From Cycas panzhihuaensis (taxonomy: Eukaryota > Plantae > Cycadophyta): 64,000 bases of DNA. The notes under the pieces were generated by a model, which was not told the origin of the DNA, made no database searches, and saw nothing but the letters and a program-made list of their open reading frames with translations. Both the position numbers and the translations under genes were made by a program. Position 1 is the first letter of the stretch, and each line of letters starts with the position of its first letter. Of this stretch, positions 12,390 through 46,394 are shown one piece after another. Where the stretch lies: contig CM041465.1 in NCBI GenBank assembly GCA_023213395.1, positions 219,053,741-219,117,740 on the forward strand, written 5' to 3'.

Positions 12390-12790
12390 GGTATGAGTCT
12401 CTAAATAGAATGGATCTTAATATCTAGGCATATGAAATGAAGTAGGAATCCTAGTAAGAACTGACTCAAAATTTGATAAATGTGTTTGAACAGGAGGTGG
12501 TTCTTCTTGAGAAAAAGAAGGATCTACAAAAGAAGGACCACCGTGAAATTGAGAGGGTTCAAGATACACTTGCTCCACTGGTATTTCATATAATTAGATC
12601 GAATCTTTGGGAGGATAAACATAAGTGTCATGAATATGATGTTCCAAAGATTTGACATAAGACGATGAAACTTCTTATCTAAAATATAAAGGTTGAATTG
12701 GAAGATTCGGTGGGAGGTCCTAAAGCCTCAAAGATCACCTAGGAGTGGGTGTTGTATTTTTTATTGCTTTAATAAGAAAATAAATGGTAG

Positions 12791-12809
12791 CTCCCCAATA
12801 AGGTCACTA
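12791..12809 (-). promoter_or_regulatory. Decayed primer binding site of element C
   Basis: TAGTGACCTTATTGGGGAG, compared with TGGCGACCATACT(A/G)GGG in A and B. Confidence 0.7.
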
Positions 12810-12810
12810 G

Positions 12811-17970: not shown

Positions 17971-18171
17971 TATTAAGACAGAATTGTCTTAGAGCTATTA
18001 AGAGAAAGGATATATAACTCTTTTACTAAGCATTTTAGCAATGTTTCACCATTCATCCAATACTAGTTTGGTATTAAGACAGAATTGTCTTAGAGCTATT
18101 AAGAGAAAGGATATATAACTCTTTTTCTAAGCATTTTAGCAATGTTTCACCATTCATCCAACACTAGTTTG
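17971..18171. repeat. 101-bp tandem duplication within the LINE
   Basis: Unit starting TATTAAGACAGAATTG at 17971 and 18072; the copies are nearly identical. Confidence 0.95.
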
Positions 18172-20170: not shown

Positions 20171-20347
20171 AGATGACCTCTCTATCTTAAATTATGTTTT
20201 TCTTTTAAAATACCAAACCAATCGTAAAGACTAATAGATCTATTACTCTAAAAAATTAGATGACCTCTCTATCTTAAATCATGTTTTTCTTTCAAAATAC
20301 CAAACCAATCGTAAAGACTAATGGATCTATTACTCTAAAAAATTAGA
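20171..20347. repeat. 87-bp tandem duplication
   Basis: Unit AGATGACCTCTCTATC... at 20171 and 20258. Confidence 0.95.
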
Positions 20348-25706: not shown

Positions 25707-28280
25707 TGTTTCCCAGCTACTGGGAATGGACTCAAGACGCATCGACTCAGGTAAGCTCAGGTATACGTTCTTACTTCTCTCTGCTCTTGCTTGACTGAGG
25801 TCATTTAGTACAGACTGCCTGACGCATGCTTGCCTACCTGCATTGCCTCTTTGCTTGATCATATTGCATGTGCTTACAACACGCTTTCAGCCTATGACGA
25901 CTCACAATGGGGGCATTCCTCAGTGAATGTTACACCCCATATGGTGCACAACCACCCCCTTTGTCTCCATGACCCCTCTGGATGCTTTAGCCAGTCATGT
26001 TCACCCCTGTTATGACACCCTGCTCATGTTGCAGTCTCTTCCAAGTCTGATTAAATCCTTGGTTGAGACCTAGTTCACTTTCTTGGCTACTTGCCCATCA
26101 CCTGGGTATTCCCCCCAGTTGTTCCAGTCTTAATTTACTCTTAATATTAACTCCAAACCCTTATTTCTGCTTATTTTTGCTTATTTTTTGTTTCCAGTCT
26201 CGTACCGCTGTAAACTTAGCAGTACCACGATCTTTGCCACGGTACAGCGAAGTTTACTGCGGGGTGACTATTTGATTTTTTTTTTTTAAAATCACGCGAT
26301 AGTTTTTGCTTTTTTCGCGGAACTACCACGTGGCACCTGCGCATTTGAGGCACCCTGAGATCCCCAATGTTCACTTATAGTGGGCAAGGGATAAAACTAA
26401 ACTTCCTCTTCATTTTCAAGGATTCTTAGTTCGTTTTTATAAAAAACTCTACTAAAATCCTCCATAGAAAACTACTACAAGATAAGACACATAATTGCTG
26501 CTCTTGACCTGGGACCATTGCTGTCCCCATTGCTCATGAACAGCAAGCTCTACATCTGTTTGCAGATCTTCACAGCTTCAAGGAGGATATACTTCAAAGT
26601 CTCCCAAAAGGACAAGCTTCAAAGGCTCTCAACTCACAGGATCACTCTCATATTTGTCTCCTCTTCCAAACCTGCCATCATATCTTACTGAATGCTGGCT
26701 TTTTCTTACCATTTCCCAGAAGGTTCATGCTTGATATCTTCACAACAAGGTACCTTCATGTTTACTTTGAAATGCATGCCATTTCTTTCCATGTTTTGTG
26801 AGTAAATTCCTAGTTTATGTGCTTTTTTGGTTGCTATACCTATTTAGCACTATTTTCCTTGCTTGTTGCACCATAGTGCTCTCCTACCATTCCTATCAGC
26901 TTGCTTTTAGGTGGCTGTTGCAAGGGGATAACATAGAGGAAGTTAGAGGGAAGAAGGCAGGGCCAGTCCCCCTTACTGCCCTTCTCCCCAAGGGTTCTGT
27001 CCCTTAATTTCTCTCCCTTTGCACCTTTGTGCCTTTCTAGAAGTCAGGTTAGGGAATTTGGAGGCTCATTTTCGGATCTAAATCAGCGTTGGTAGCCCAT
27101 TACCATGCTAGTTTTAGATTTTCGTCTGTTGGTTTTGGGCATCGCATAAGCCCCAAAACTGATTCTTGTCGGTTAATAGTTTACAACCCACCCAGTTAGA
27201 CGATTTGCTGTCTGTAGCATCTTGTTCTTTGGGGTGCTTGCATACCTCTTAGTTACCTTTTTCTTCCTTATTGTTCGCTGCCCCATGTTCTTGCTGCTGG
27301 TTCACTTTCCTTTCCTAAGGACAAGTGGAGACCATCCGTGGGTGAGTTATCCAATCCGAGGCTATACTCTTGTTTGGGTGTCATTTGCGGTAATTGTTTG
27401 TGGAAACTTTGTTGAATGCTATTTCATTAGATAATAATGCATATGCTTAGCTTAGTTTGACTATGTTTACTCTAAGTTTAATATACATATTAGATCTATT
27501 TCGTAGCCCCCCTTCTGAGAGGGAGACGCTTGTTTGCTTGGCAGGATCTTGCATCGGTGGAGTCGCGTGTGGAAAAAACCCATTGCAGGTTAGTTCTATA
27601 TTTGACACTTTTTATCATTTTCTGTTATTTACCGTTCACATTTTGCACATATTGGGGGAGGTAAGCTAGCCCCTCTTCAGTCATTCACGGCATCCATCGC
27701 CGATCGGTATCGGATGTGCAACAAGTGGAGTGGGAAGGAACGGGAAGCGAAGAGACGCATAGCACTCCATTCAGATGCCAGGTCCAGGTATTTTCCTTGT
27801 CCTTGCATGTTTTCTTTATGGTGTTGTACTTTATGCACATGCTTGCATAGTTCAAAACACATAAGAAACTGAAAGAGGAAAAGAATATACTTTTGCTTTG
27901 CATATCTTTTATCTAGTGGTTAGTCTAGCATATTTAGATAGTTCATTTTATGTTAGAACTACCCACACCTTGCCCCTTTGGCCAGCCTACACCTAGACGC
28001 CACATTTTACATACATTCCCATTCTCGTTTTGCCTTCTGACTTCCTTGAGAAGATGCAACGTGCCAGGTTCTCTCCTCCTCTTCCAGGCCATCCGAGGGC
28101 TAGGAAGGCCTTGCTTTCTGGAACTACCTAGAAGCAACCAGGCACCTCTGCAGCTCCCGAATCCACGCTCCGGCCCACGAATGCCCTGTGAGATGAATCT
28201 TTGCTGTTTAGCCCAACCTAGTCTTGCATAATCCATTCTCTTGCTAAACGTAGGGATACCACCCCACGGACAGCATTTCA
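25707..28280 (+). repeat. 5' LTR of element A (2574 bp)
   Basis: TGTTTCCC...CATTTCA; colinear with 39539-42115. Confidence 0.97.
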
Positions 28281-28281
28281 C

Positions 28282-28299
28282 TGGCGACCATACTAGGGA
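28282..28299 (+). promoter_or_regulatory. Primer binding site of A (tRNA-Arg-like)
   Basis: TGGCGACCATACTAGGGA, 1 nt after the LTR. It resembles the TGGCGACTCCACTGGGGA Arg PBS of Ogre/Tat elements; the tRNA identity is inferred. Confidence 0.85.
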
Positions 28300-28544
28300 C
28301 TGCCAGTAAAGAAACTAGTTTCGCTTCCCTTTTTCGTTGGTGTTCTTGCTTTTAGGCAGCTTTCTCGTTTTGCTTTTCAGTTGGGTAGCCCCCAACATAT
28401 TTGTTTCATGCCCCTTTTACTTTCTTCTAACAACATTCGTGAAGGCGTTGCATGTGACGTTTCTCGCGTCGCTTACGAGGTCTACCGCTGTTGTTAGAAG
28501 ACCCATCGCCTTGTTCCCTTCCATCGTCAGATCCTGATTCGACA

Positions 28545-31500
28545 ATGGAAGGTTACCAGTCTGATTGGGCTTACCACACTAAGGTCTCAGGAACTCAAGA
28601 GTTTCCTGCGTCTGTTCCGGGATCCACCCACGAGGGTGATGATCCTATCTATTATCCGGGTGATCTGTTTCACCCTTATGACCTCCATCCTTCTGCTCAT
28701 GCAACAGAAGGCTGGCCTCTTCACGAGACTCACCATCCTATTGGTGAATCTTATGAGGAGCACCCTGAGGGGTCCCTGACATTCGAGATCCCATCGACCT
28801 CATATGGCTACAAGGACACCCCTCATGCCGACGTGGTTAAAGCACTCAGCGAGTACTTTCGAGCAACTCGCCATCAACCATGTCCCAGATGGTTTGAAGA
28901 AGTTTTGCATGGTGTAGTGCCTTCTTCATCCGCACCTGCGCCTCCTACAACAAATGATTCTTCTACCCATGCACACTCATCCCATGCCGTGTCCACACCC
29001 ATATGGGGTGGACCCGTTACACCCATATGGGGTTGCACCACCTACGGGTGGCCCATATGGGAAGAATCTAGTCCCGCACCCTTCATTTCTGCCATCCAGT
29101 GCAACTCCTATTGCCACGCCTTCGCAAGGGAATGTGCCTCCCTTCCAAGGTGTTTATCCGCAACTCCCCTTCCAGCAAGGGGCATTCCCCCAAGGAGAGA
29201 TGGGTTTACCACCCCCATCCATTCCTGCTTCTTTATTGTTCGTCGATCCTTTGGCCCATGTAAGGACATGTCCCTTCATGGACTACAGGTCGACGTCGCT
29301 ATCCGTTGAGGCGCTAAGGACTAACCTGCCACCTCACCCTCCTGAAGTTCCTAAATTTGACAGAACTTCATCGCAAGACCCAACCGAGCACGTGCGTAGT
29401 TTCTCTATGGCATGCATAGACTACTAGGCTTACAACCACATTCTAATGAAGCTATTTCCGTGATCCTTGCAGGGTGACGCCCTTAAATGGTTCTACCATC
29501 TCCCTGCTCACTCCATTTATTCATTCCAGCAATTGGTGGATGAATTCGTTAATTATTTTGACATAGCCCGTCCATTCAAGAGCAGAATGAAAGCTCTCCT
29601 TTCGCTCAAAAAAGGTCACAATGAAATGAATCGTGACTTTGTGAGGCGATTCCATGATCTCCTTCACTCTACCAAGGCCACATTGCCTGAGGAGTTGAAG
29701 CGAGATCTCTTCGTCAATGCACTTTACCCCGAAGTGCATGTGGAAGTCCTCAAGATGGGGGCAACCGCATGTGACTCCATGATCACGAAGTGCTTGGTGT
29801 TAGAGGCTATTGAGATCCAAGCTGGACTCAAGAAACCTCTTAAGCCCTCACAACATTGTGAGGCACCTCCCCCAGCAAAGGAAACCAAACCTTCGCAACC
29901 TGCCAGGTCTACCATTCATCCTACTGAGAGGACTTTAGACCCCCTTACTTTCGCTATACGCTCATTCAAGCACACGATGAAGGAGCTTAAACTCCAATCC
30001 CCTTCATTTCCAACCTCCCATAAACTAATTCAACAAGCTTCTCATGTCGTTCCCCCCAAAGCGGGTGGCACCCAACCTTCTCAAGTAAGGAGAGTTGATC
30101 CTCCTCTTGAGAAGAGGTGATGTTCCATCCATGGGGAATGTTTTCACGATGACTCACATTGTCGGGTGCAACACCCACGTGATGCCCTGCCGCATGATTC
30201 GTCTCCTAGACGGGCATCGAGGCCTAATCTCGATCAACCCATTCATAGGGATCTGTTCCCCAAACATGGGGAGTGTGATCGTAATGTTCAACAAAGAAAC
30301 AATCAGAATCAGGATAGATCCCCTGATTCTCGCCCTTCGCATGGTAGAGGGAAGGGTGCGCAAGGTTCATCCTCCTCCTCGCGCTCCCCTGACCGTCGTG
30401 CTCCATCACCTTCGCGGTCCCGTAACAAGGAAAAGAAGGTGATCCAGATGTTTGAGACCACTCCCCTTTATGCCTTGACCCGGTCTCAAGTCGCAAAAGA
30501 GGCAACTGGTGCCTTTGCGTCTACGTCGCACCTTGATCCTCCTCTGGAAGTCGTTCCTCCAGAGATTCTTGCGCTTCCCAAGAGCATTCCTGTCTGCCCC
30601 AGTCACTTTGACTTTAGGAGAGCCCTTACCCAACCCATAGGGAGGGGTAGGCCTTTCTCCGTAGTCGAAGAGCTTCTTACTGTGGCTGCCGGGATGTCCA
30701 TCATGGACGTCTTGAGAAGCTACCTCGAGTAACGAATGCTCCTTTTGGAAGCTTTAGGATTGAATGACGCGCTTGTTCACGCTCTGGGCACAACCCAAAG
30801 TGGTGAACCCATCATCTCCTTCAATCCTAGAGATCTTCCCCCAGCCAGTGGAAGAGAATGCCAATGGAACTTCCCTTTCACAATTACCATTGATATTCCT
30901 GATTGCACATTGCGAAGAATTGTTGTGGACAATGGTTCTTTTGTCAATGCCATGCCCTTGCGCGTCATGCAAGAGCTTGGCATTTCTGCCTTGGAACCTA
31001 TTCTATGGCGATGTCAAGGTTACGGCGGTAGTAAGAAGACTCCCCTGGGATTTGTCTCGATACCTCTTACCCTCGAGGATAAGACTGTCCTTGCCGACAT
31101 CGTTGTCCTCGATGTTGATGTTGATTACAACCTTCTTTTGGGTTGACCATGGCTTGACCAAATGGGAGCCGTGTGTTCCACTCGTTGGGGACAACTTAAG
31201 TTTGTCCATAACAGACAAATGAGAGTTATCTCCCGTGAGTGACCGCTTGCAAAATAAACTAGACCTTCTACTCAAGCAAGCCATGGCCATACGAAGGGAA
31301 GCAAACGCCCTTCTGATCATGCCTTAGCCTGCTCGATCGGTATCCCCGATCCCTCTTGCTATGAAGAAGATCCCACATCTTCTTCCTCTGATTTAACGCG
31401 TTTCACCACCATCGGCATCAAAAGCTATGGGTACGTTGTCATGTTTGACGATGATGGGTCCCATAGTGAGGATGAGGATCTTCCTCACCCAGTTTCTTTC

Positions 31501-34500
31501 CTCTGCGCTAGTGGGGGGTATTCATCTAGTTCTAGGTCTCCTCCTAGGACTCCTTTTGTCACAGAACTCGATCACTCTCCTGTGTCACACACCATTGTTA
31601 GTGTTGACCGGCAGAATCCTGGTTTTCCCTTTCCATCACCTCCCATGAGTGATGGCATTAAGAGTTTCCCTCTTGCTTTTTATGAGGGATCTCTCCTTGA
31701 CTCTCCCTTAGAGTCCCTTATGGATGTTGGGTAGCTTACAGGCCATATCGGTCCTATCACTCCTATGCCATCCTGCACCTCGTCCATTCGAGGTCAGGTC
31801 ATCCATGGGGTGGACTACTTTGAGGATGATGAGGCTTTACTGGAGCACTTAACTGGCTCCATGCCCATTTTACCTTCTGGTCACCACAAGCTCGGCCACC
31901 AGAAGGTCCTAGTGATTGGGTCCACACTAGTTGACCCGATCCCTTCTTCCATTTTGTTTGTTCTTGTTGATCTTGCCCCCCTCCATTTCGAGGAGGAGAA
32001 TGCTATGTGTGTGGGAGCAACCCAAGATATAGTCCTCACCCTGGGCAAGATCATTAAGGTAGGGGCAGAATGTACTCCTAATGAAGTGAGGGAATACTCC
32101 CTCCTGTTCCAGGAATTCCATAATGTGTTCACGTGGGACTACTCCGACATGAAGGGAATTGATCCCTCCATCATCACACACAACCTTACGACTATTCTTG
32201 ACACTCATCCCGTGCATCAGAAGCAGTGTCCTCTCCATCCCAAACTTTTAGCCACCGTTAAGATGGAGGTTGAAAAGCTTTTGGATGCAGGACTCATCTC
32301 TTCCATCGATTACCCCAAGTGGGTATCGAACATCGTTCCCATTGCTAAAAAGAATGAGACCATTCGTATATGTGTCGACTTCTGCAACATAAACAATGCT
32401 TGTCCTAAGGACAACTTTCCTCTCCCCTTTATCGATCAAATAATTGATTGTATGACTGGATTCGAAGTCATGTCCTTAATGGATGGCTTCTCTGGCTATA
32501 ACCAAATCTAGATTTCTCCTTAAGACTGCCACAAGACGGCCTTCACTACACCATGGGGTACCTTTGCCTACAAGGCAATGCCCTTTGGTCTTAAGAATGC
32601 ATGGGCTACTTATCAAAGAGCCATGCATTTCATTTTTCACGACCTCATCAACAATATGTTAGAGGTCTTCATTGACGATATGATGGGTCTTTCACATACC
32701 AGAGCCCATCATCCCTCTGACTTGCGGGCCATCTTCTCACGATGCCGCAAGTACCATGTCAGTTTAAACCTGCTTAAATGTGTGTTTGCCGCCACCTCAG
32801 GCAAACTCTTGGGTTTCCTTATGTCAAAGCAAGGAATCCAAATCAATCCAGAAAAAGTCAAGGCAATCCTTGACATGCCGCCTGCTAAAACCCAAGACAA
32901 ATTAAGTCATTTCTAGGCAGGCTTAGCTTCCTTAGGCATTTTTTGGTAGATTTTTCCATAAATGCCAAACCCCTTACCAACCTATTGAAGAAAGGAGCCC
33001 CATTTGTTTGGACTAACAAGACTCAACAAGCCTTTATAGGACTCAAGGAAGCTCTCGTTTCTGCTCCTACGTTGGCGCCTCCTTGCTTTGATAGGCCCTT
33101 CATCCTATACACCTCAGCAACTGACGAATCCCTGGGCATAATGCTCGCATAGGAGGATGACTCAGGAACAGAGAGAGCTATCTATTTCATTAGCCACACC
33201 CTCATTACCGCTGAACTAAACTATCCTCCCACCAAGAAAGAATGCCTCTCCTTGGTCCATGCGACCAAGAAGTTTAGGCATTACTTGCTTGGCAATACTA
33301 CTAAGGTGATCATTCAATCTGATCCCTTGCGTTACTTACTTACTTATTCAGATTTAACGGGTAGGGAAGGTCGTTGGGCTGTCCTACTTTAAGAGTTTGA
33401 CTTATAAATCATTAACAGGAAGTCAAAGAAGGGAATGATAATGGTAGAATAATTAGTTGATGCTGCCATTCCCAATGCAGGCGGCGTTCCCGTTGATGAC
33501 TCTTTCCCCGACGAGTCTATTTTGACTGTCCAAGATGCTTCTCCTCACCCACTCACTAATAGCGAGTGGTATGGCAACATTGTTTAATATTTGACTCAAC
33601 AGGAATATTGCCCTGAAGCCAGCAACAAGGTTAGGTCGCACATCTGCGCCACAGTGAGACAACACTTCCTCATGGATGAAGTATTATACAAGAGATCCTT
33701 CGATAGGATCCTGCTTCGTTGCATCGCTTCTGACGAAACGGACTAAATACTCTGCGAATGCCATCATGGCATTTGTGGGGGCCACTTTGGGGGTCAATCT
33801 ATGGCCCAAAGGATCCTTCACATGGGTTATTACTAGCCGTCCCTTTTCAAGGACGCCCATGCCTATGCCCTTAGATGTCGACGATGCCATGAGCACACCA
33901 ATATCTCTCATGTGCCTTCCGAGGCCTTGCACCCTATCGTATCTCCATGGCCCTTTTCTCAATGGGGTTTAGACCTCATTGGTGCTATATCGCTGCCATC
34001 TTCCGCATAACATAAATACATCTTAACCGCTACTAAATATTTCACCAAATGGGCAGAGGCAATCCCCCTGTCCACTACGCCTGGCAAGACGATAGCCACC
34101 TTCATCTACCAGCATATCATTTGCCGTTTCGGGATTCCAAATGTCCTAATTACAGATAATGCAACCTCCTTTTGTAATAAGGAAATAGACAAGCTTTGCG
34201 AGAAATTCAAGATCTCGCATAAGACCTCATCTCCTTATTACCCCCAGGCAAACGGGCAAGTTGAGTCCTTCAACAAAACTATTGTCAACATTCTAAAGAA
34301 GACCGCTGCGCAATCTCAAAGAGATTGGCACCTCCAACTCCCTTCCGCCCTGTGGGCCTATTGCACTTCTATCCGCATGGCTACTGGAATGACTCCATTA
34401 TCTTTAGTTTATGGAACCAAGACAGTACTCCCACTGGAAGTGGAGATTCCCTCTCTACGGGTTTCCCTTCGAGGTCTCATTGATGAGGAGTCTATCCGCT

Positions 34501-34811
34501 AGGCTCGCCTCCTAGATCTCGAAGCCCTGGATGAGAGGCACTTAATGGCTTATCAAGCGAATCTCGCTTTGAAAGGCCACCTATAAAGGACTCACGACAA
34601 ACGTCTTTGTGCTCTTCCTTTATGCCCTGGGGACCATGTCCTCAAGTTGGAATACCTCTACGATCGCCTGACCAAATTTGGGCCCAAATGGGTAGGTCCC
34701 TTCGTTGTTCTCGAAAGCCTCGACAATGGCACCTGCAGGATCGCCACCTTGGAAGGCCTGGAATTTGAGAAGGCAGTCAACAGAATGTTCCTTAAAAAGT
34801 GTTATGCATGA
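28545..34811 (+). pseudogene. gag-pol of element A (in-frame stops, at least two frameshifts)
   Basis: Gag ALKWFYHLPAHSIYSFQQLVDEF. CxxHx4Hx4C knuckle at about 30121. Protease VVDNGS...LLLG. RT WVSNIVPIAKK, MDGFSGYNQI and FIDD. RH PFILYTSATDE. INT zinc finger and core. Stop at 34809-34811. Confidence 0.95.
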
Positions 34812-34840
34812 TCTTTCGGCGATCCCTTCGCGATGCTCCA

Positions 34841-35192
34841 AAATGAGCCTAAACTACCATCTTAAATTGTTCCCATTTCTCTTGACCACGGGTTGAATGA
34901 CAATTTAAGGTGTCTTCTTCATCTCCTCCTGGTTCCTCCCATGGAACCCATGTTCCCATTTCCTTTGGGACTTTGTCCTCCTATTTTAGCATCCCGCAGC
35001 TAGGATGACGCTATGAAATGAGCCTAAACTACCATCTTAGGTTGTTCCCATCCTTCCCAACCATGGGTAGAATGGTAATTTAAGATGGATTCTCGCTTTT
35101 CCTTCTGGTTCCTCCCATGGAACCTATGTTCCCGTATCCTCTCGGGAACCTTTCGTCTTCCTATTTGGGCATCCCCTAGTTAGGACAACGCT
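34841..35192 (+). repeat. Two 175-bp hairpin-rich tandem units downstream of pol
   Basis: Units start AAATGAGCCTAAACTACCATCTTA at 34841 and 35016. Each contains several inverted repeats. Confidence 0.9.
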
Positions 35193-35619
35193 TTGGAGTA
35201 CCATTACTCCTCTCTCCTGCCTGTTGTTTCCTTCACATATTCTATTATGCTCCTCCGTGGACGTGTATGTCACTCTATTTCTAACCTCACACCTCTCTAT
35301 CACCTCTAATTACGGTGGATGTGTGTGCTCCTATTAGACATATAGCCATATATGGAAGGAAATATGTGCACTTACAACAAAACATTTACAACATACAAAA
35401 CAAAGCATACATGCTATCTACCACATGATATACACAACATCTCGTATCAAAGTGGGGTGCCAATTACCCCGTATATATATACACCAAAATCATATGTTAC
35501 ATCATACATGTGGGAAGCCGGTATCCTTGTAGGGGGGGTACAATCATATGAGTATATATATGACCCCTTGGAGGCCCGTGCTTTCCCCTGTCAAAATAAC
35601 ATACATGAGTATTACACTA

Positions 35620-38062
35620 CTACTGCCCTGCTCCTAGGGTACCATCTCCTGGCCTGTTTGATCCCTCTCCTGGGGACCACATCCTTCCGAGGCTCCTCCT
35701 GGGCCTCCGTGAGCTACCTGCCTCGCTTCCCTAATCGCATGGCCATCTCGGGGTCGTCGTTACTATATGAGTGTATGTCCTACTCCTGCTCGACCTCAAC
35801 ACCATCTGGTCCACTAGTTGATCGTATTGAACTTGGATACGTTTCCTCTCTCCCCGGAGTCCCTCCTCCATACTCTGGAATCTCTCCTCTGTCACTCTGA
35901 GGCGCTCCTCTAGCACTGTTATCCAGACCATGCTCCCTATGTCTCCACCAGCTCCTCCCTGAGCCTCTAGAGCCTGGACCCGTCCACGTAGCCTGTCTCG
36001 CTCGCTCCTCACCTCATCGAGCTCTTGCTACATCTGTCCCCTGAAAGCTATGTGCTCTTGGGACTCTATAGCCCAGATGTCTCTCACCCTCGCCAACGGG
36101 GCGAATGCCTCCATGTAAGGACCTGCTGATCTAGGCGCATCCCCTGCCTGGATGGGTGGTTGCCCCTTTGCATACACCTAAGGGAACATCTCCCTCACCA
36201 TGGCCTTTACCAGTCTCCTAACCTCTGTAGCACCTGCCAATGCAACATGCCATCTGTTAGTGAATATCCCACTGCATGCCATGATAAAACCAAATCAAAT
36301 ATCTATCAAGCTGTCAAATGACTAGGGAATGGTTAGGCCTCACCTGCCATGGCTGCCGGCTCCTCTGCTCGCGTGACATCCTCTCCTCTTGGCTCTCCGC
36401 CAACTTCGGGTACCTCATCCTCGGGTACCTCCTCTACCTGGTCCTCTCTCCTCGCAGGGACTGGCTCAACTCTCGTCTCTCCAGATCTCCTCATGATCCG
36501 TAGCCTGCGGGCCCTAGTCACCAACCCCCTGCTCTCCTCAGTTGCCCCTGATGGGCCTACCTCTTCTTCGGCAGTCTCGGATGGTCCTGCTGCTCCTCCT
36601 GTCGACCTCGATGGACCTACCTCTCCCACAGGTCGCGATGGGCTGATCCCATCTCCTCCGTCAGTGTCATCATCATCGTCATCATCATCTATGGGCACTC
36701 CTGCTCTGCCTACCTCATCATCGCTATCCCACCTCACCGATCTGTGTGGATTTGCCATATAGTTTGTCATGGTGATGAGGTCCAGCGATGTCGCCTCCAT
36801 TGATCGCTGGACGTGGGCCTAGTCCTTCATCCCCCTCAGTCGAGTCTGCCATCTGTGGACCATTGGAGCCCACTCTGCTATGGGGTGTGGTTCCCCCACT
36901 GGTGTCACTGCCACGAAGTGATCAAAGAACCAGCACTGCAACAATGTGTTGTAAGAGAGTCCTCTCTTCCCTGCTACTCTGATGGCATCGAGCTGTGTGA
37001 CGAGGTTCACTGCTATCATAGTCACCCAGTCCAATCTCTCACTGGCTTCGCAATGGCGCACTGTATCTATCCATCCTCCGGGTACCTCTCTATAATTCTG
37101 TTTATGGGAAATCTAGAACAGAATGCACAGCGTGATCAGTTTCCTCACTCGAGGAATCCTCGACATCAGCATAGTCTGGAGAGGGACTCCTCTTCGCTCC
37201 CACCTGTCAGCCCCTGTAAAGAACATGGCCACCTCTCTGTGTGCTACCTCAGTGTTAGGCAGTGGTCCCAATGTCATCGACCTCCCAGTCGCTAGTACCC
37301 CCAAGATATGCCGGATGTCTCCTGGTGTCACTGTCACATCGCCTACTTGCGGCAAGTGAAACACGTGCCTCCTCCAATCCTAGTGTGACACTATATCGAC
37401 CAAAAGTCTATGATCTGATGTGAACTGAGGTGTCTTCAAGGCTTTGTACATGCCACACCTCTGCAGAATCTCCTTGTCCCCCCGAGACATCATCTTGATG
37501 TAACTCAGCATAGCCATGCCAACGTTTTCACGGTTATCCACCGCGATAACTGCCTGCCAGCACCAAAAATCAATCAAAGTCAGCCTCCTAATAGTCATTT
37601 ATGCTCTTGGCTATCTCTCAGTTCTCTCTGCCTGAGATTTGGGGCCTTATGGCCTCTCATCTTCTTTTTTCTGATTTTCTACCTTCATACCACGCTAAAC
37701 TTAGTGGTACTACTAAATTTAGCATGGGTCCTGCGACGATCAGGGGCCCTACAGCAATGATCGCGGCACCACAATCTTCGCCACAGTATGAACGATAACC
37801 CCCTTAAAAAGGGGGTTTTTTACCTTGAAAAAAAAAAAAAAAATCCTTTTGATGGACCCTATGGGGCCCACCGGGATCAGGGCTCTCTAATGCCCAGGTC
37901 CCGCCTCTTTCTGGGTCCAATTCAGACTCCGAGAGGCCTCCAATTGCCCATAAGGGGCGTACAAATTTCACAAAAAACTACAAAAAAGTAATGAAATAAA
38001 AACTTTGAAATGGGAAGGGTTTTGTGAGATCCACTCATTGGATCTGGCCTGGCTGTCGCCAT
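35620..38062 (-). pseudogene. Antisense 3-exon PMD / acidic linker / coiled-coil gene of element A (about 615 aa when spliced)
   Basis: Exons 38062-38039, 37553-36344 and 36233-35620 total 1848 nt in one continuous frame with only TAG stops. PMD motifs VFHLPQVGDVTVTPGDIRHILG and LDW...GLSYNTLLQCWFFDHF. Intron 2 is CAG|GTGAGG...CTAAC...GCAG|G. Confidence 0.85.
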
Positions 38063-38191
38063 CTCGTCTCGACGATCTTGCTGGCTCTCGTTGCGCTCTG
38101 ATCCAATAGTCAGATCATCCCTCGCATGCCTCCAAAGTTGGGCGACGCTCCGTTGCGTAAGGAGATGGCTCTGGTTTCTCATGAGAGCTGG

Positions 38192-38231
38192 TGAAAATGA
38201 ATCCATTTTCCATTCAATTTCCTTATATAGG
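38192..38231 (-). promoter_or_regulatory. TATA box + initiator-like element for the antisense gene of A
   Basis: Minus-strand CCTATATAAGG followed about 28 nt later by TTCATTTTCA, in a CpG-retaining region. Confidence 0.65.
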
Positions 38232-38756
38232 CGGGGGCCCCGACGGGCACTTCTTCCGTTTTTGACCTCGCGACAGCCGTTGGGACCGTCTCGGTTCCCT
38301 GATCGCCTTTGCCTTTTGGCCCTGTTGCCCGTTGTGCTCTATTGACGCCCTTTTTGCCCTCTCTTATAAGGGCATTTATGGCGCCCCATTATTGCACCTT
38401 TTCTAGGGCCCTTCTACCTCGTTTTACGTGCCACTCCCATGCATGCCTGAGTTTATACTCGTTTGGCTCATTTTGCCATCCTGGACTCATTCCTGCAACC
38501 CTTTTCTGCTCCTAGGGTCTCCAAAAGGAATGGTCCCTTGTCTGAGGGCATGTTTTGCTTCCTAAAGTAACCTTTGGTACTCTAGGGCGTGTTTTCTCTG
38601 CCCGCTCTCAGATGGTGGTTAGACTGCTTGCTCTCGTCCTTGGGTAACCTCATTGCTAGGTCCTCTTATCCTTCACGGCCACCTTTTTTTGCTTGCCTTT
38701 CGAGTATCTCCTTTGTTCCATCATTATTTATTTGCTACCAAGATTTTGTGTTGCTC

Positions 38757-39179
38757 ATGTCTCTCTATATATTTATCGACGACGGAAGCCGTGGTAACCC
38801 TGGGCTTTCTACCGCTGCTTGGATCCTTCGCAGCCCTTCCAGACATGATTTCCTATGTTCTGGCATCTTCATCCTCGAGGCAACTAATAACGGAGCCGAA
38901 TAAATGGTTATTATTGAAGCCCTTACCGATGCTCTTTGTTTCCATCATGGACCCATCGTGTTACTTTGCAATTCTTAGGTTGTGGTGTCCCATCTCACCT
39001 AGGTTTACCAGGTGCGATGCCCTCATCTGAGAACCCTCGCTTCAGCCGCCAGGTCTCTCTTAGCTCACTTTTCATCAGTTCATATCCAGCACATCCCTCG
39101 GGACCTTAATGCTGAGGTAGACAGCCTCGTCTGCCTTATCCTTGAGCGTCGCCTCCCTCTTCTTAGCGATTACCTTTGA
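38757..39179 (+). pseudogene. Stand-alone archaeal-type RNase HI (aRH) of element A, 140 codons
   Basis: MSLYIFIDDGSRGNPGLS...ATNNGAE*...CNS*VV...IQHIPRDLNAEVDSL, in a single frame with 3 internal stops. Confidence 0.92.
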
Positions 39180-39526
39180 GGCTTGCCTGGCCAGCCCATG
39201 CCCGAGTCTCTGGTTACCTTTAGTTTGATGTGCTTGTTCAGTTTGCTAGGTGCCCTCCTATCGCTCGTTGCACTTCGGCAATGGGGGCATCCCCTTCATT
39301 GGCTCTATTCACTTGCAGGTCAATGCTTAGACGATGCGTAGGCAGCCCCTATGTTGTCCTCATCTTCGTCTCCCTTGTCCACACGTTCTGCCACGACACT
39401 CGCTGACACCCTTGGTCCATATGCTGTTCGTGATTATTTTTATATATATGTATGCATGTGCTACTGATGTTTTTGGTTATCAGAATTCACCATCATATCA
39501 TGCTTCCGAGCGGTGAGGCTCTGCAG

Positions 39527-39538
39527 CCAAGGGGGCAG
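39527..39538 (+). promoter_or_regulatory. Polypurine tract of A
   Basis: CCAAGGGGGCAG directly before the 3' LTR. B has CCAAGGGAGCAG. Confidence 0.9.
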
Positions 39539-42115
39539 TGTTTCTCGACTACCAAGAATGGACTTGAGATGCATTGACTCAGGTAAGCTCAGGTATACGT
39601 TCTCAATTCTCTCTGCTCTTGCTTGACTGAGGTCATTTAGTACAGACTGCCTGATGTATGCTTGCCTGCTTGCATTGCCTCTTTGCTTAATCATATTGCA
39701 TGTGCTTACAGCACACTTTCAGCCTATGATGACTCACAATGGGGGCATTCCTCAGTGAATGTTACACCCCATATGGCGTACAGCCACTCACTTTGTCTCC
39801 ACAACCCCTCTGGATGCTTAAGCCAGTCATGTTCGCCCCTGCTATGACACCCTGCTCGTGTTGCAGTCTCTTCCAAGTCTGATTAAATCCTTGGTTGAGA
39901 CCTAGTTCACTTTCTTGGCTACTTGCCCATCACCTGGGCATTCCCCCCAGTTGTTCCAGTCTTAATTTACTCTTAATATTAACTCCAAACCCTTATTTCT
40001 GCTTATTTTTTCTTATTTTTTATTTCTAGTCTCGTACCATTGTAAACTTAGTGGTACCGCGATCTTTGCCATGGTACCACAAAGTTTATCGTGGGGTGAC
40101 TGTTTGAAATTATTTTTAAAAATCATGCGATAGTTTCTACTTTTTTCGCGGAACTGCCGCATGGCACCTATGCATTTGAGGCACCCTGAGATCCCCAACG
40201 TTCACCTGTAGTAGGCAGGGGATAAAACTAAACTTCCTCTTCATTTTCAAGGATTCTTAGTTCATTTTTACAAAAAACTCTACAAAAATCCTCCACAGAA
40301 AACTACTGCAAGACAAGACACACAGTTGCTGCTCTTGACCTGGGACCATTACTGTCCCTATTGCTTATGAATAGTAAGCTCTACATCTGTTTGCAGGTCT
40401 TCACAGCTTTAAGGAGGATATACTTCAAAGTCTCCCAAAAGGACAAGCTTCAAAGGCTCTCAACTCACAGGATCACTCTCACATTTGTCTCCTCTTCCAA
40501 ACTTGCCATCATATCTTACTGAATGCTGGCTTTTTCTTACTATTTTCCAGCAGGTTCATGCTTGATATCTTCACAACAAGGTACCTTCATGTTTACTTTG
40601 AAATGCATGCCATTTCTTTCCATGTTTTATGAGTAAATTCCTAGTTTATGTGCTTTTTTGGTTGCTATGCCTGTTTAGCACTATTTTCCTTGCTTGTTGC
40701 ACCATAGTGCTCTCCTACCATTCCTGCCAGCTTGCTTTTAGGTGGCTGTTGCAAGGGGATAACATAGAGGAAGTTAGAGAGAAGAAAGCGGGGCCAGTCC
40801 CCCTTGCTGCCCTTCTCCCCAAGGGTTCCGTCCCTTACTTTCTCTCCCTTTGCACCTTTGTGCCTTTCTAGAAGTCGGGTTAGGGAATTTGGAGGCTCAT
40901 TTTTTGATCTAAATCAGCGTTGGCAGCCCATTGCCATGTTGGTTTTAGATTTTCGTCCATTAGTTTTGGGCATCGTATAAGCCCCGAAACTGATTCTTAC
41001 CGGTTAACAGTTTACAACCCACCCAGTTAGATGATTTGCTGTCCGTAGCATCTCATTCTTTGGGGTGCTTGCATACCTCTTAGTTACCTTTTTCTTCCTC
41101 GTTGTTCGCTGCCCCATGTTCTTGCTGCTGGTTCGCTTTCCTTTCCTGAGGACAAGTGGAGACCATCTGTGGATGAGTTAGCCATTCCGAGGCTATACTC
41201 TTATTTAGGTGTCATTTGCAGTAACTATTTGTAGAAACTTTGTTGAATGTTGTTTCATTAGATAATAATGCATATGCTTAGCGTAGTTTGACTCTGTTTA
41301 CTCTAAGTTTAATATACATATTAGATCTATTTCGTAGCCCCTCTTCCGAGAGGGAGACACTTGCTTGTTTGCTTGGCAGGATCTCGCATCGGTGGAGTCG
41401 TGTGTGGAACAAACCCATTGCAGGTTAGTTCCATATTTGACACTTTTTGTCATTTTCCGTTATTTACTGTTCACATTTTGCACATATTGGGGGAGGTAAG
41501 CTAGCCCCTCTTCGGTCGTTCACGGCATCCATTGCCGACAGGTATCACATGTGCAACAAGTGCAGTGGGAAGGAGCGGGAAGCGAAGAGACTCGTAGTGC
41601 TCCATTCAGATGTCAGGTCTAGGTATTTTCCTTATCCTTGCATGTTTTCTTTATGGTGTTGTACTTTATGCACATGCTTGCATACTTAGAAACACATAAG
41701 AAACCAAAAGAGGAAAAGAAAATACTTTTGCTTTGCATATCTTTTATCTAGTGGTTAGTCTAGCATATTTAGATAGTTCATTTCATATTAGAACTACCCA
41801 CACCTTGCTCCTTTGGCCAGCCTACACCTAGATGCCACATTTTACATACATTCCCATTCTCGTTTTGCCTTCTCACTTACTTGAGAAGACGCAATGTGCC
41901 AGGTTCTCTACTCCTCTTCTCGGCCATCCAAGGGGTAGGAAGGCCTCACTTTCTAGAACTACCTAGAAGCAACTAGGCACCTCTGCAGCTCCTGAATTCA
42001 TGCTCCGGCGCACGGACACCCTGTGAGGTGAATCTTTGCTATTTAGCCCAACCTAGTCTTGCATGATCTATTCTCTTACTAAATATAGGGATACCACCCC
42101 GCGGACAGTGTTTCA
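39539..42115 (+). repeat. 3' LTR of element A (2577 bp)
   Basis: TGTTTCTC...GTTTCA; differs from the 5' LTR almost only by transitions. Confidence 0.97.
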
Positions 42116-42994
42116 CCTATCTATTTGGGGTTGATAGGAGGAGCTTATATAGAGAGATGTTCCTAATGTCTAAAAGAATTATTACTAAAATGAGCTCATT
42201 AATTTAGGAACTTTATCAGATACAATGATAGATAGGAAGTTTTAGAGATAAAAGATGAATTAGATATAGAGTTTAACCAAATAGGGGGATTTATATGTAG
42301 TGTGGACAGGGAGGAAATAATTGTATTTAGCTAGGTAATTAATGATGACCCAAATAGAGTCACACCTAACTAATAGTGGGAGTCCTATGATGAAGCCTAT
42401 GGTAATATCTTACCATTTACTCTAAGGGATTTTCAAGGGTTAAAGTAGGTCATGCTAGGCTTTGTTATGTACCTTGTTATATAGGCAAGTATCACATTCA
42501 AATATGTATATAAGGATAATAGATTTCATACAAGGCTAGTAAAAATCAGACCAAATATGATAATAGGTTTTGTTAAACCCTGAATAGCCTCCAAGGGGTA
42601 TGTTATGATATTTAGATAGGATGTAGTTAATAATTGGGGAGGTGGGTTATACAAATATATGGTTTTGATAAAGAAGAAAATTATTGTATACACTCTCATC
42701 TTTCCTATTTTGTACCTTATTAGCCTAAGTTGCAAAGTCAGGTTGGGCTTTATTAGTCTTGGCCAAGTCATAGAGCCAAGAAGGTTCAAGAATAGAGATG
42801 GCTTGGATGGTTAGTTTAGCCAGGAGTAAGGAAAGGGAATCCATAATAACATTGTTCTTTCCCTTTTTGTATCATATGGAAAAGTTAAAAACTTGTAATC
42901 AATCAACCCATTTGGCTTGTTCTTCTGACAAAATAGGTTGATCAAATAAGTAGTAGAGACTATGATGGTATGTTAAAATGGTAAACTTGGAGCA
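42116..42994 (-). mobile_element. Continuation of the host chromovirus (end of RH, INT zinc finger and core)
   Basis: LSEEQAKWVD*LQ..YKKGKNNV and EYHNIP..GYSGFNKTY. Joins 25706 across the TSD. Confidence 0.85.
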
Positions 42995-45900
42995 TGTTTC
43001 TCGACCACTAGGAATGGATTACGATAGGACCACATAGGTAAGGATAGGTATGCTCTTATCCCTCTCACCTTATTTACATTTTATTCATTGAGTTAAGTTG
43101 TGGTTGTGTAACTGCTTGACTACTTGGTTTGCTTGCTCATCCCTTTACCTGTGTGTGTATTCCATGCATATGATGACCAAGACTCCAGTCTAATGGCACC
43201 ATTAAGCTCCCATGGTTAATCCCCACTTGGCAATAGGTCCCTCATATGCCTTCGTAGCTTAATTTGGGTGATTCCCAACTCTTTTTATGCCTTCTTGTAG
43301 CATCTTCTCTCCTCTCATTGTGCCCCATCTATTCCTTCATCTGCCAAGGATAGCCTATTAAGGTTTCCGATGGAAAGATGCCCCTTGTTACTTATTTTGC
43401 ATAAGATTTGCCTACAAACTTCATCGATGTTAGTTGTTCAGACCTAATTTATACTCTAGCACCCTTGCGTACCATCATCCCATCGAGTGTTGGCTTACTT
43501 TGATGGTTTTCTTACATGTTTCTATTATTTTTTATCCTATAAAATAGCCCAAATTTGATATATCGACCTTTAGGGATGCGTTTTAGGGCTCCCAGTAATA
43601 TAACAGACATTGTTTTATTCATTTTAATTAATATTTATCAACTTTTATTAGAATTTATTGATATGCTATCACCCTGCTCCTTTTTTTATTTACACCACTC
43701 TAATTATTACATCCCACTAATATATTAGTTATACTGCTAATATATTAGCAGTGCTAGGAATCATTTCATAGTGTGACTATTATAAATTTAAATATGACTA
43801 GAAATGGTTAAAATCACATTTACTGTGAGCTTGACACAATCTTTGGCCTTGGGACAAGCCCGGATCAGGCCCTAATAGTCCCAAGACCTCACCTAAACCA
43901 TAAAAACCTTAATTCAAACTAATTTTCCCTCTTCTTGAACTCAATTTTTCTACTCAACATTATATTTTTTCTCTTAAAAAGAAAAACTCTCATCCTCTTG
44001 AGATCTACTTGCAATCTAAGCACAAAATGACACTTTAGTAAAGGCAAGTAAGAATAATCAGGCTCTACGACATTGTTAGATTAGCTTCAAGCTATCAAGT
44101 CACAAAGAAGAGTTTCTTTCTTCTCCAAAACATAGAAAATTTTCTCCAAAACTCTTGGTTTTCAAGCTAAGAACTCTCACTTATATCAATCTTTTCTTCA
44201 TCCAAAAAGGTAAGTGATTTTGTTATGGTTTTATTGCCTGACACTTGAGTTTTATTTTATTCTTTTGATTAATTACCGTGTTTCTCAATGATTTTTAGAT
44301 TTAGAAGCTCTTTTATGGTCATTAGAAGTAAATCTACAACAAATCATAGAGGCAACCCCTCTATCTATCACCAAACCTCTAATTTCATCCTCCAAATCTT
44401 TAGTTGTTGGTAAGGAGGGGATAGAAGTGGCTAGAGGAGATTATAAGAAGGACTTTGGGTTTGAGTTCTAGCTCTATAAGCCCCCTTCTACTAGGGTAAC
44501 CCCTCCTCAATACTAGTTAATATCTCTCTTCCTCATGCCTCAACTAGTGCATCACTTAGATGTGAAACTTGCAACTTTCTTCCTTGGTGATCTATCACCT
44601 TACCTCAACACTTGTTGTCCCTAAAAGACTATCATCCAATTGTGAGATTCCATTTGTCCATTTGGGGGAAACATAGATAGTAGTGGAGCTCGCTATTCTA
44701 AGGTAACACTCCCACTTCGTCCTAACCTTTGCCTCTCTTATTTGTTGCATGTTGTATGTTGCACTAGATAGTAGAATTATTGCTTAAGATCTTGTTCTAT
44801 TATTACACAACTAAATAAGTGTTCCAAATATCTTTATTAGTAAGTTGGAATGCATGTATAATTATTTGTTATTTGTAGAAGTTATTTGTTGTGTGATTTA
44901 GGTGGAGGTAAATCTGTCTGCAAATCAAGCGATTTTTGCTAGGAGGTAACATTACTTCTTATTTTGGTTTATGTTGCACTTTCGTTTTTGCTACTCTCTT
45001 TTTGTTTTGTTTATTCAAACTTGGGGAAGGTAAGGAAGCCCTGCCAAAATGTCACCATTAATACTTATGATAACAAAGAAAGTGAAGTTGCCAATGAAGA
45101 GGGTACATGGAGAGAGAGTTGTGCTACTTCATCAGCTGTCATGTATCTAGGTGCACTTTGTCCAACCTTTCCTCTCTTTGCTCCTTTCACCCCTCTGTTA
45201 CCCTTAAATAAAAATATATTGAAAGGAAAGTGTTCTATTTTGTTTCTTTTATGCACTTGCATATCACATAAAGAAGGAAAGCATAACACAAACTAAGCAC
45301 CCTTCCCCTTTTCTCCTAAATTAGAAGAAAAGTTTTGCATACTTCCTCTTTCCTCTCGGCCCTGCATATTGCATATTAAAAAGGTAAAAGGAAAGTATAC
45401 TTGATCCCTTCCTTACACTAATAGGAAACATTATTGCATCCCTCTTATTAGTTGCATTGAGAAAAGGAACTAGTTGCACGTATGTGGTTATTGCACTCTC
45501 TCTTCCCTTTCATCCCCTTAAATAATCCCTTGAGAGAAAAAGAAATGAGAGTGAGGGAGAGTAGCTAGGCTATTTCATTGCACTTGTTTACTTATTTCCA
45601 AAGCATCACAACAATCTTTGATTATAAATAAACCTACCTCACAATAAACAAACACACACAAACCTACCCTTCTTCTCTTTGCAACTAGGGGACAAATCTC
45701 CAAAAATGTAGTTGCTTCTATCATACTAAAGCAAAATAATAAACTAAATATACCCCAACTACCTTGGGCTCTTACCTATAACAATTGTCATCCCTTCTTC
45801 TCATTTCTAGAGTTCCTTTCTACAAGGAATTATTGCTCTTTTGTCTCCCCTCTAAAAGGAGATCCTTTTCACCCTCTTTCTCCCTAAGGGTGGGAGAGCC

Positions 45901-46132
45901 CTACCTTGGATACTCAGTAACCTAAGGATGTTTTTCCTACTTCCTTTATTTTGCATCAAGGAGACCCCTTGGAAGAGAGGTGGCCTATGCTTGGTTGTGG
46001 CTCTTCGAACCTACATTCTAACATGTGGATGCCCTTTAAGGGTATCTTGGCTACTTTTCTTCCCTCCCATTCATTATCTTATATAGCTAGTAGGATAGTC
46101 AAGACCTAGTAACCCCCAGAGGTGCACTTCCA
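42995..46132 (+). repeat. 5' LTR of element B (3138 bp)
   Basis: TGTTTCTCGACC...CTTCCA followed by PBS TGGCAACCATACTGGGG. The first 1.2 kb matches 58189-59412. Confidence 0.9.
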
Positions 46133-46133
46133 T

Positions 46134-46151
46134 TGGCAACCATACTGGGGT
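46134..46151 (+). promoter_or_regulatory. Primer binding site of B
   Basis: TGGCAACCATACTGGGGT, homologous to the PBS of A. Confidence 0.85.
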
Positions 46152-46394
46152 CCTGCCAGTAAGGGAAAGCAATTCCCCTTTTTTGTTAGTTCTAGCCTCC
46201 CTATTTTCCTTTATTTACCTCCTTGGTTCATTGGGTAACCCCCTAACATCTTCATTATTTCATTTCTCTTGTTTATTCTATGACCTTTAGCTGAGATATG
46301 AATGTGATATTTCTCTTATTTCTTGTGAGGTCTTCCCTCTATCTTGAAAGAACTTTCATATTCCTCCATCCCCTCATCTGATTCTAAATCGACA

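Follow-up and report, generated by a model that had tools for sequence, protein, structure and literature searches.

Tat elements, a lineage of Ty3/Gypsy LTR retrotransposons, have already been described as carrying an antisense PMD open reading frame and an archaeal-type RNase H (aRNH) (PMC4408406), and the PMD extra ORF goes back to Steinbauerova 2011, as cited in PMC4408406. The lineages in Ustyantsev 2015 (PMC4408406) that are relevant here are III and V. A second related system is VANC21, whose binding sites are arrays of motifs within its own intron and the terminal non-coding regions (Hosaka 2017, PMC5735166). MAIL1/MAIN and MAIL2, which are PMD-C proteins, associate with particular DNA motifs (one a palindrome) and counteract silencing by Polycomb; their PMD fold is reported to resemble the DUF1985 domain of VANC (bioRxiv 10.1101/2024.09.27.615353). 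What has been reported is motif association and not direct binding, and such association is known for PMD-C only. Anti-silencing of TEs is suggested there for PMD-C proteins of DNA-transposon origin alone (bioRxiv 10.1101/2024.09.27.615353), and retrotransposon PMDs have been assigned to clade PMD-A (PMC5418596).

The window, meaning the whole 64,000-nt stretch of DNA that was analysed, contains three diverged Tat-lineage Ty3/Gypsy elements (A, B, and C) and a fourth Tat fragment (60292-64000). An earlier, sequence-only reading had described the three diverged Tat elements, and its observations largely hold. Element A (25707-42115, + strand) has paired LTRs with TG..CA ends and a primer-binding site. 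Its 5' LTR (25707-28281, +) is 92.1% identical to 39539-42116, the 3' LTR (39539-42115/6, +) has a polypurine tract ahead of it, and the target-site duplication matches at 4/5 positions. The primer-binding site (28282-28299, +) directly follows the LTR and is related to a site in B at 46134. A broken gag-pol (28458-34808, +) encodes gag, RT, Gypsy-type RNase H, and integrase (Pfam Retrotrans_gag, RVT_1, RT_RNaseH, and rve) and is homologous to B, C, and the fourth fragment. Element B (42989-59412, +) has a 5' LTR (42989-~46132) followed by the PBS-like site at 46134, and only the first 1.23 kb is left of its 3' LTR (58182-59412), 82.5% identical to the 5' copy. Element C (about 1-15000, − strand) retains gag (11366-11007), RT (8789-7300), and IN (6592-5832); its LTRs were looked for and not identified within the 64-kb window. 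The structural hallmarks of Tat elements (paired LTRs, TG..CA, target-site duplication, PBS, and polypurine tract) are present in A, partly present in B, and were not found in C. The order gag, RT, Gypsy RNase H, and integrase with an extra archaeal-type RNase H is present (Pfam, including RVT_3) and is that of known Tat elements. Stops or frameshifts run throughout all of the Tat elements in the window, and A, B, and C are evidently anciently diverged Tat-lineage LTR retrotransposons that are now dead copies.

An antisense PMD gene was found in all three elements (3/3), in the 3' part of the Gypsy element as in known Tat elements. The gene had been described as containing introns, which fits A and B, where sequence comparison predicts three GT-AG introns each; in C it is the donor of intron 1, conserved in all three elements, that has been kept. 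In A, a predicted exon 1 of 28 nt (38035-38062, −) begins with an ATG at 38062, and both ATG and donor are conserved in the B counterpart (56261-56288). Predicted intron 1 (37554-38034, −) has the conserved donor, a polypyrimidine tract, and an AG acceptor. Exon 2 (36344-37553, −) encodes the PMD domain and an acidic tail in a single frame with three in-frame stops. The putative exon 3 (36178-36233, −) is 56 nt long as in B, with GT-AG borders conserved between the two, and putative exon 4 (35731-36040, −) encodes a charged, coiled-coil-like tail with a tblastn match to B and an acceptor at 36041/36040 that is conserved there. Exon 1, exon 3, and intron 3 (137 nt) have equal lengths in A and B. 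The B gene is broken (54346-56288, −; predicted intron 1 at about 55812-56260), and that of C is very decayed (1125-2588, +, with the element on −; predicted intron 1 at 1204-1522). A coiled-coil-like PMD tail is also found in Tat lineage V; unlike in known Tat elements, the PMD gene here has three predicted introns.

The PMD pieces score 18.6–23.8 bits against a Pfam PMD (PF10536) cut-off of 34.9 and are collinear with profile positions 1-213. Exon 2 of A has 66–73% identity to four short relatives, the intact fragments P0001-P0004, and 27 of the 30 nearest Atlas clusters are PMD. By Pfam and the Atlas, the product of the element gene is probably a PMD protein and not a DUF1985 protein. Neutral evolution of PMD would have counted against the sequence-only reading. 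Between A and B, pN is 0.30 versus a pS of 0.74 (pN/pS about 0.4), near the pN of gag (0.23), values that indicate purifying selection.

A frameshifted mini-ORF in A (38757-39176, +; Pfam RVT_3) has a conserved ATG and lies head to head with the PMD gene. Its homologue in B is at 57106-57519 (+), and C has one between pol and the PMD gene (4359-4826, −; RVT_3, 30.4 bits). An RVT_3-type RNase H with a conserved ATG is thus present in 3/3 elements, and the order of the modules in C is swapped relative to A and B, with the RNase H ahead of the PMD gene. Tat lineage III likewise has its aRNH far downstream. Points of difference from known Tat elements are the conserved ATG that belongs to the aRNH itself, its placement in A and B on the far side of the antisense gene and head to head with that gene, and the swapped order of C. 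The PMD gene and the RNase H are accessory genes already known for the Tat lineage. The free-standing RNase H had been listed as a component of the candidate trans-regulatory system; it has no evident part in the proposed loop, in which the PMD protein or a partner would act on a motif in its own LTR and gene. Between the PMD and RNase H starts, a block in A (38377-38473) is 73–76% identical to 56725-56819 in B, against a saturated background. The promoter signals attributed to the PMD gene amount to TATA-like boxes, one of them in this block and conserved between A and B (38449-38459 and 56795-56805).

Each element appears to have its motif cluster twice, in the LTR and in intron 1 of the PMD gene; for C, where the LTR site is presumed, this is likely. 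The clusters have a period of ~20 bp, and those of A and B are built round a GGTACC-centred palindrome. They comprise few units: each A or B site has 2–3 core units, and the C intron has four. In A, a T-rich 10-bp repeat with inverted half-sites marks the decayed 5' LTR cluster (26160-26270), the 3' LTR cluster (39992-40102) contains the sequence shared with intron 1, and the intron cluster (37661-37727) consists of a T-rich tract and a palindrome. Palindromes in B lie in the decayed 5' LTR (43716-43757), intron 1 (55961-56006), and the 3' LTR (58906-58949; 34 nt, perfect). The C intron has an array of four direct units with a period of 20 (1365-1440, +; TRF), and an inverted pair of the same motif occurs 3.3 kb upstream of gag (14627-14654), in the presumed LTR.

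Local alignment of the A 3' LTR with intron 1 gave a score of 42 over 56 nt (shuffle maximum 33, 0/200), and an exact 15-mer is common to both (40043-40057 in the LTR). For B, intron 1 scored 55–63 against the 3' LTR and 42–52 against the decayed 5' LTR (shuffle maxima 32–35; 0/200 shuffles reached the score in every case), and a 20-mer with at most two mismatches is common to LTR and intron. For A and B, then, LTR and intron share sequence far more than chance would allow. Sharing is likely in C, where the upstream pair represents two exact matches versus 0.03 expected (P about 5e-4) at the same offset from gag as the LTR clusters of A and B. The claim that every family shares a motif between LTR and intron 1 stands for A and B; for C, with its LTR not identified in the window, it comes down to the inverted pair. 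The LTR clusters of A and B are 0.5–0.7 kb into the LTR, and a TATA-like, A/T-rich stretch follows 20–40 nt downstream; the intron clusters lie 150–170 nt from the acceptor. Across the 64 kb, the 8-nt core class has six exact matches, every one of them within an A or B LTR or B intron 1. Motifs in the element's own intron and terminal non-coding regions that are rare elsewhere, the pattern of VANC targets, are thus found here, with few units. The intron site is kept in all three families despite the swapped order of RNase H and PMD gene in C.

The motif had been said to differ between families, and this is true of only part of it. A and B have a common 11-nt core (identity 0.84 throughout, within and between the two families) and outer arms that differ by family: arm identity is 0.71 between LTR and intron within a family and 0.31–0.33 between families. 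The unit in C is different from that in A and B. With a core common to A and B, family specificity of the motif is only partial; among these three families it is the arms that appear to track the family, covarying between LTR and intron. Synonymous sites are saturated between A and B (pS 0.74–0.78) and their LTRs do not otherwise align, yet the core and flanking landmarks persist. Judged by this comparison, the motif clusters are genuine and have been conserved while synonymous divergence reached saturation.

No description of a motif cluster shared between an LTR and PMD intron 1 was found in the searchable literature, and this sharing would set A, B, and probably C apart from the Tat elements described so far. 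One likeness is to the VANC anti-silencing proteins of VANDAL DNA transposons, where an element-encoded accessory protein is likewise combined with short motifs in its own introns and in terminal non-coding regions; VANC motifs vary among related families, as the arms appear to do here. The differences are that the elements here are LTR retrotransposons and not MULEs, the protein is PMD and not DUF1985, each site has 2–4 palindromic units instead of dense same-orientation arrays, and binding and demethylation are hypothetical. MAIL-type modules tie a PMD protein to a specific DNA motif, one of them palindromic, in the proximal promoter (within about 200 bp of the transcription start), with proposed anti-silencing. 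The tie here is putative, and MAIL-type proteins are host PMD-C, in contrast to retrotransposon PMD-A. HTLV-1 Tax, a complex-retrovirus trans-activator, acts on 21-bp repeats in the U3 of its own LTR. Common to both are a 3'-region accessory gene, U3 repeats that are short and periodic, and a self-activation loop (proposed here), but the proteins are unrelated and the gene here is antisense and predicted to be spliced, with a second site in its own intron, making this a pure analogy.

The clusters may represent a double-stranded-DNA cis-element under selection, through which a single sequence-specific factor would control both the LTR and the PMD gene. Since one genome houses all of the families and the arms covary by family, that factor would most economically be element-encoded, and PMD, with or without a partner protein, is the sole candidate. 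In the way of VANC or the MAIL-type modules, PMD would recognise its own element and either activate it or counter its silencing by blocking DNA methylation or Polycomb marks. The feedback interpretation of the sequence-only reading thus has partial support: the clusters persist despite saturation, their arms covary between LTR and intron, PMD is under purifying selection, and the published behaviour of VANC21 and of PMD-C proteins strengthens the analogy. We propose only tentatively, at somewhat less than an even chance, that a selected cis-element couples LTR and PMD gene to one factor with the PMD protein as leading candidate. The fuller version is rather unlikely: that PMD is a family-specific DNA-recognition factor on co-evolving, CpG-containing palindromic clusters in its own LTR and intron 1, forming a VANC-like loop and hinting at an ancestral role behind host MAIL-type modules. 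Against a PMD factor stand the 2–4 units per site versus the dense arrays required by VANC, a sample of three decayed elements with the LTR of C presumed only, PMD pieces that score below the Pfam cut-off, palindromes that would fold as RNA too, a core common to A and B, and the assignment of retrotransposon PMDs to PMD-A when motif association is known for PMD-C only.

Host transcription factors might instead bind the clusters, an LTR enhancer having been re-used in PMD intron 1 for sense/antisense co-expression while the PMD protein does another job. The core common to A and B, with its GTAC centre, is one that a common host factor could read; the LTR cluster lies just upstream of a TATA-like stretch, and plant first introns often hold enhancers. 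In B and in the A intron, the arms resemble A/T-rich palindromes of the type to which plant MADS or homeodomain factors bind. A single host factor, however, would have no need of family-specific arms that covary between LTR and intron, nor of the different unit in C, and we consider this explanation a doubtful one. The clusters could also work as RNA hairpins, either in genomic RNA (3' region, U3; dimerisation, packaging, or export) or in the intron of the PMD pre-mRNA. All of the A and B palindromes and the C upstream pair do fold well (z −3.0 to −5.1), and the A intron hairpin reaches −23.7 kcal/mol on the PMD-sense strand versus −16.6 on the other because of G-U pairs. However, any palindrome folds on either strand, and the C intron array is made of direct repeats without a fold (z +0.75). 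Half-sites are 14 nt apart in the A LTR but abut in the intron, which would put the core in a stem at one place and in a loop at the other. The wobble-versus-mismatch pattern favours no consistent strand and the 20-bp period fits a protein on DNA, leaving a role in RNA highly improbable.

A functionless copy, with an LTR segment duplicated into the intron or an intron segment into the LTR and the likeness due to common descent or occasional sequence exchange, would account for the similarity in A, which spans 56 nt including the T-rich repeat in the same orientation and resembles a segmental copy. Neutral sites are saturated between A and B, yet the core persists at both places in equivalent positions. 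It is hard to see how two 35-nt sites 2–3 kb apart would exchange sequence, and a template switch from one to the other would remove the RNase H and the polypurine tract. We regard such a copy as very unlikely.

No function has been assigned to the PMD extra ORF of plant Gypsy elements, known since 2011, and host PMD proteins have only recently been linked to particular DNA motifs and to a protective effect against Polycomb silencing. A conserved, family-matched cis-site beside a retrotransposon PMD gene makes the question of PMD as a self-regulator concretely and cheaply testable. If PMD is not the factor, the clusters remain a conserved LTR/intron enhancer worth annotating. If it is, LTR retrotransposons, which make up the bulk of large plant genomes, would join VANDAL DNA transposons, so far the only elements for which sequence-specific anti-silencing has been shown, and this would be relevant to how the host MAIN/MAIL system arose.

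Self-comparison and protein-level mapping identified four Tat-like Ty3/Gypsy elements in the window, including one decayed copy from each of three diverged families (A, B, and C). Element A (plus strand, 25707-42115) has 2.58 kb LTRs that are 92.1% identical with TG..CA ends, a target-site duplication matching at 4 of 5 positions, a primer-binding site at 28282, a polypurine tract before 39539, and Pfam domains for gag, RVT_1, RT_RNaseH, and rve. Element B begins at 42989, and its 5' LTR extends to ~46132, where a primer-binding site related to that of A begins. Its 3' LTR is reduced to the first 1.23 kb (58182-59412), with 82.5% identity to the 5' LTR. Element C is on the minus strand (gag 11366-11007, RT 8789-7300, integrase 6592-5832), with no LTRs identifiable within the window. 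The fourth is a minus-strand fragment (60292-64000) that runs from gag to RT. Every copy contains stops or frameshifts. The paired LTRs have diverged by K=0.081 in A and 0.196 in B, and transitions account for 84% and 75% of the changes, respectively, many of them of the CpG-decay type. These copies are old, methylated, and dead.

Several structural features were observed around these elements. The LTR starts of A (25707-25730) and B (42989-43012) are nearly identical over the first ~20 bases, the rest of the LTRs being unalignable, and the two polypurine tracts resemble each other; these represent conserved ends for integrase and priming. The truncated 3' LTR of B breaks off where a 21-bp tandem repeat (59416-59485) is found, and beyond the break (59413-60292) lies the truncated RT end of the fourth Tat fragment on the opposite strand, making this interval a nested insertion or deletion junction. 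A tandem duplication of ~175 bp (34841-35195, 79% identical) directly follows the integrase of A. Beyond the 5' end of the antisense gene of C described below, a 50-bp tandem repeat (234-447; 3.4-3.9 units, 74-78% matches) occupies the place where the 3' LTR of C would start, and no counterpart to it was found in the sequence preceding gag in C. Between C and A lies an AT-rich stretch that shows no coding signal and contains tandem duplications of 101 bp and 87 bp (17971-18171; 20166-20347) and a 200-bp direct repeat pair 2.3 kb apart (19152-19346 and 21444-21654, 80% identical); it may be a small non-autonomous element.

The sequence-only reading had assigned to each family an antisense PMD gene and an additional archaeal-type RNase H (aRH), and both were borne out. 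They match published Tat elements, for which antisense PMD open reading frames (ORFs) have been described, along with a coiled-coil tail that some lineages have and, in lineage III of gymnosperms, an archaeal-type RNase H at a distal position (PMC4408406). In A and B, the interval from integrase to 3' LTR holds the PMD gene on the minus strand, followed by the RNase H on the plus strand. The aRH genes (38757-39176 in A, 57106-57519 in B, and 4826-4359 in C) match RVT_3 above the cut-off, lie 1-4 kb from integrase, and start in all three families at a conserved ATG that precedes the first catalytic motif by a few codons. The aRH and PMD genes of A and B are head to head, ~0.7-0.8 kb from ATG to ATG. 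The aRH may be expressed from a promoter of its own or by way of a subgenomic or spliced RNA. The order in C is pol, RNase H, and antisense PMD gene, so that the modules are swapped relative to A and B. Microsatellites are present within functional parts of the decayed copies (56597-56727; 1957-2030; 3646-3750), as (TA)65 in the PMD/aRH intergenic region of B, (CA)n(AT)n within PMD exon 2 of C, and (CA)52 between PMD and aRH of C.

The PMD gene of A is present as four minus-strand pieces (37598-37383, 37379-37116, 37112-36822, and 36818-36336) in one frame, split only by three stop codons. Their matches to Pfam PMD are below the cut-off yet collinear over profile positions 1-213. Four intact fragments in public assemblies share 66-73% identity with these pieces and are uninterrupted at two of the three stops. 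PMD made up 27 of the 30 nearest clusters in the ESM Atlas, and a search of a library of 1.84 billion proteins gave only four short relatives. No solved structure was found among the relatives, and a metagenome scan yielded no relatives. Alignment of A and B in the orientation of the gene supports a predicted structure of four exons, in which exon 1 (28 nt), exon 3 (56 nt), and intron 3 (137 nt) would each have the same length in both families. GT-AG borders are preserved between A and B, the reading frame of A continues from exon 1 into exon 2, and C retains a consensus donor and an acceptor for the putative intron 1. The intron model was drawn from sequence conservation, with the exons viewed one at a time.

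Nonsynonymous divergence (pN) between A and B is 0.30 for PMD exon 2, 0.23 for gag, 0.20 for RT, 0.18 for integrase, and 0.26 for RNase H, and synonymous sites are saturated (pS 0.74-0.78). Because pN is low against saturated pS, PMD was under purifying selection during family divergence, slightly more relaxed than pol. Two further blocks are conserved between A and B. One lies within PMD intron 1 (37833-37910 and 56071-56148), is 72-76% identical, and ends in a long T run. The other (35631-35732 and 53924-54026) is a 100-nt block just past the stop of the coiled-coil exon, ~75% identical over a saturated background, and may represent additional coding sequence, a 3' UTR, or a poly(A) signal; an unmatched plus-strand ORF of 184 codons (35346-35897) overlaps it. 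In a k-mer screen, GGGCCC-type words were enriched around the 5' part of the A PMD gene and absent from the LTRs, with the 7-mer GGGGCCC occurring four times in the PMD 5' region and not at all in the rest of the internal region or the LTRs.

Short motif clusters shared between LTR and PMD intron 1 were identified in A and B, where they are GGTACC-centered palindromes composed of a core and outer arms. In A, exact copies of a 15-mer are present in intron 1 (37696-37710) and the 3' LTR (40043-40057), each with an inverted partner beside it, and decayed copies are found in the 5' LTR; at three or fewer mismatches there are 11 matches against 2.3 expected. The best local alignment between the 3' LTR and intron 1 of A spans 56 nt, includes a T-rich 10-bp repeat, and scores 42 (maximum of 200 shuffles, 33). 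In B, a perfect 34-nt palindrome in the 3' LTR (58910-58943) matches intron 1 (55969-56002). Scores against intron 1 are 55-63 for the 3' LTR of B (shuffle maximum 32-33) and 42-52 for the decayed 5' LTR copy (shuffle maximum 33-35). Intron 1 of C has four direct units with a 20-bp period, and an inverted pair of exact copies of a 12-mer from this array lies at 14627-14654. The pair is upstream of gag by 3.3 kb, a distance equal to that of the LTR clusters in A and B.

The sharing proposed by the sequence-only reading thus holds for A and B, with alignment scores above all shuffles excluding chance as its source. For C alone, the motif-count test is significant (two upstream hits against 0.03 expected, P about 5e-4), whereas plain local alignment is not (score 30, null mean 29). 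The first k-mer screen found no words occurring at least twice in both LTR and intron; it was too strict because the sites hold only two to three decayed units. The 8-nt core class TGGYRCCA has six exact matches in the whole window, and all of them fall in the A and B LTRs or in intron 1 of B. Read by eye, GTACC-like cores of A and B recur every 20-22 bp with two to three units per site, and the description of the 20-bp unit as inverted 4-mers 10 nt apart is by inspection only.

Cluster positions are equivalent in A and B, with intron sites 150-170 nt from the acceptor and LTR sites 0.5-0.7 kb into the LTR. The LTRs of A do not align with those of B apart from a few landmarks around the cluster, which include a T-rich stretch before it and a short conserved word and A/T-rich TATA-like stretch after it. 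Neutral DNA should be randomized at this distance, yet both families retain the core in LTR and intron at equivalent positions, which argues for constraint on these non-coding clusters. Core differences between the two LTRs of one element are TG versus CA, so the core probably contained a CpG at insertion that has since left a decay signature. Three other readings were rejected. A bidirectional splice acceptor or branch site (T-rich tract, branch-like word, and AG) lacks a following reading frame on both strands, and as an acceptor it would make no sense inside an LTR. A tRNA or primer-binding-like origin of the core was dismissed, as the search found no tRNA genes and the real primer-binding sites are elsewhere. 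An internal sense promoter of aRH could apply to A and B, whose cluster is 1 kb upstream of the aRH start, and fails as a general reading because the aRH of C is elsewhere and its cluster is still in PMD intron 1.

Motif differences between families had also been claimed, and these proved to reside in the arms. The outer 13 nt of the half-site are 71% identical between LTR and intron within a family and 31-33% between families; the inner 11 nt, the core, are 84% identical within and 84-85% between A and B and so do not differ. The C unit differs from the A/B unit. Host transcription-factor sites would explain both the core common to A and B and the location close to a promoter; the co-varying arms do not fit them, and we consider them a rather unlikely explanation. 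RNA hairpins are improbable: every palindrome folds, but the intron array of C does not, the half-sites of A are spaced differently in the LTR and the intron, and the pattern of wobble pairs does not favor one strand consistently. That the intron segment is merely a functionless duplicate is similarly improbable, being contradicted by conservation across saturated divergence.

A selected DNA cis-element common to the LTR and the PMD gene is the most economical reading. A family-specific trans factor may read the clusters, which fits better than one common host factor because the families share one genome and the arms co-vary between LTR and intron within a family. The PMD protein is the only element-encoded candidate. 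We tentatively suggest, as a possibility that could well prove wrong, that it recognizes the motif of its own family in its own LTR and intron 1; the full version, in which this recognition would counter silencing, is hypothetical and more doubtful. Such a trans-regulatory loop remains hypothetical, though reasonable, and published systems make it plausible. VANC21, an anti-silencing protein of VANDAL elements, recognizes a 9-nt motif that it binds in arrays within its own intron, the intron of a neighboring gene, and terminal non-coding regions, with motifs that vary by family (PMC5735166). The host PMD-C proteins MAIL1/MAIN and MAIL2 localize to specific motifs, one of them palindromic, that are required for expression and H3K27me3 exclusion; localization at motifs is reported and direct DNA binding is unproven (bioRxiv 10.1101/2024.09.27.615353). 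The same study describes the PMD-C fold as resembling the DUF1985 domain of VANC and raises TE-encoded PMD-C proteins as possible anti-silencing factors, a speculation also made for MULE-borne PMD by Ikeda 2017 (PMC5418596).

No description of a cis-motif for retrotransposon PMD-A was found in the literature searched. The elements and their accessory genes were already known; the conserved, family-matched cluster in LTR and intron 1 is real and, as far as we searched, apparently undescribed. It turns the old question of the role of PMD in Gypsy elements into a direct binding test.
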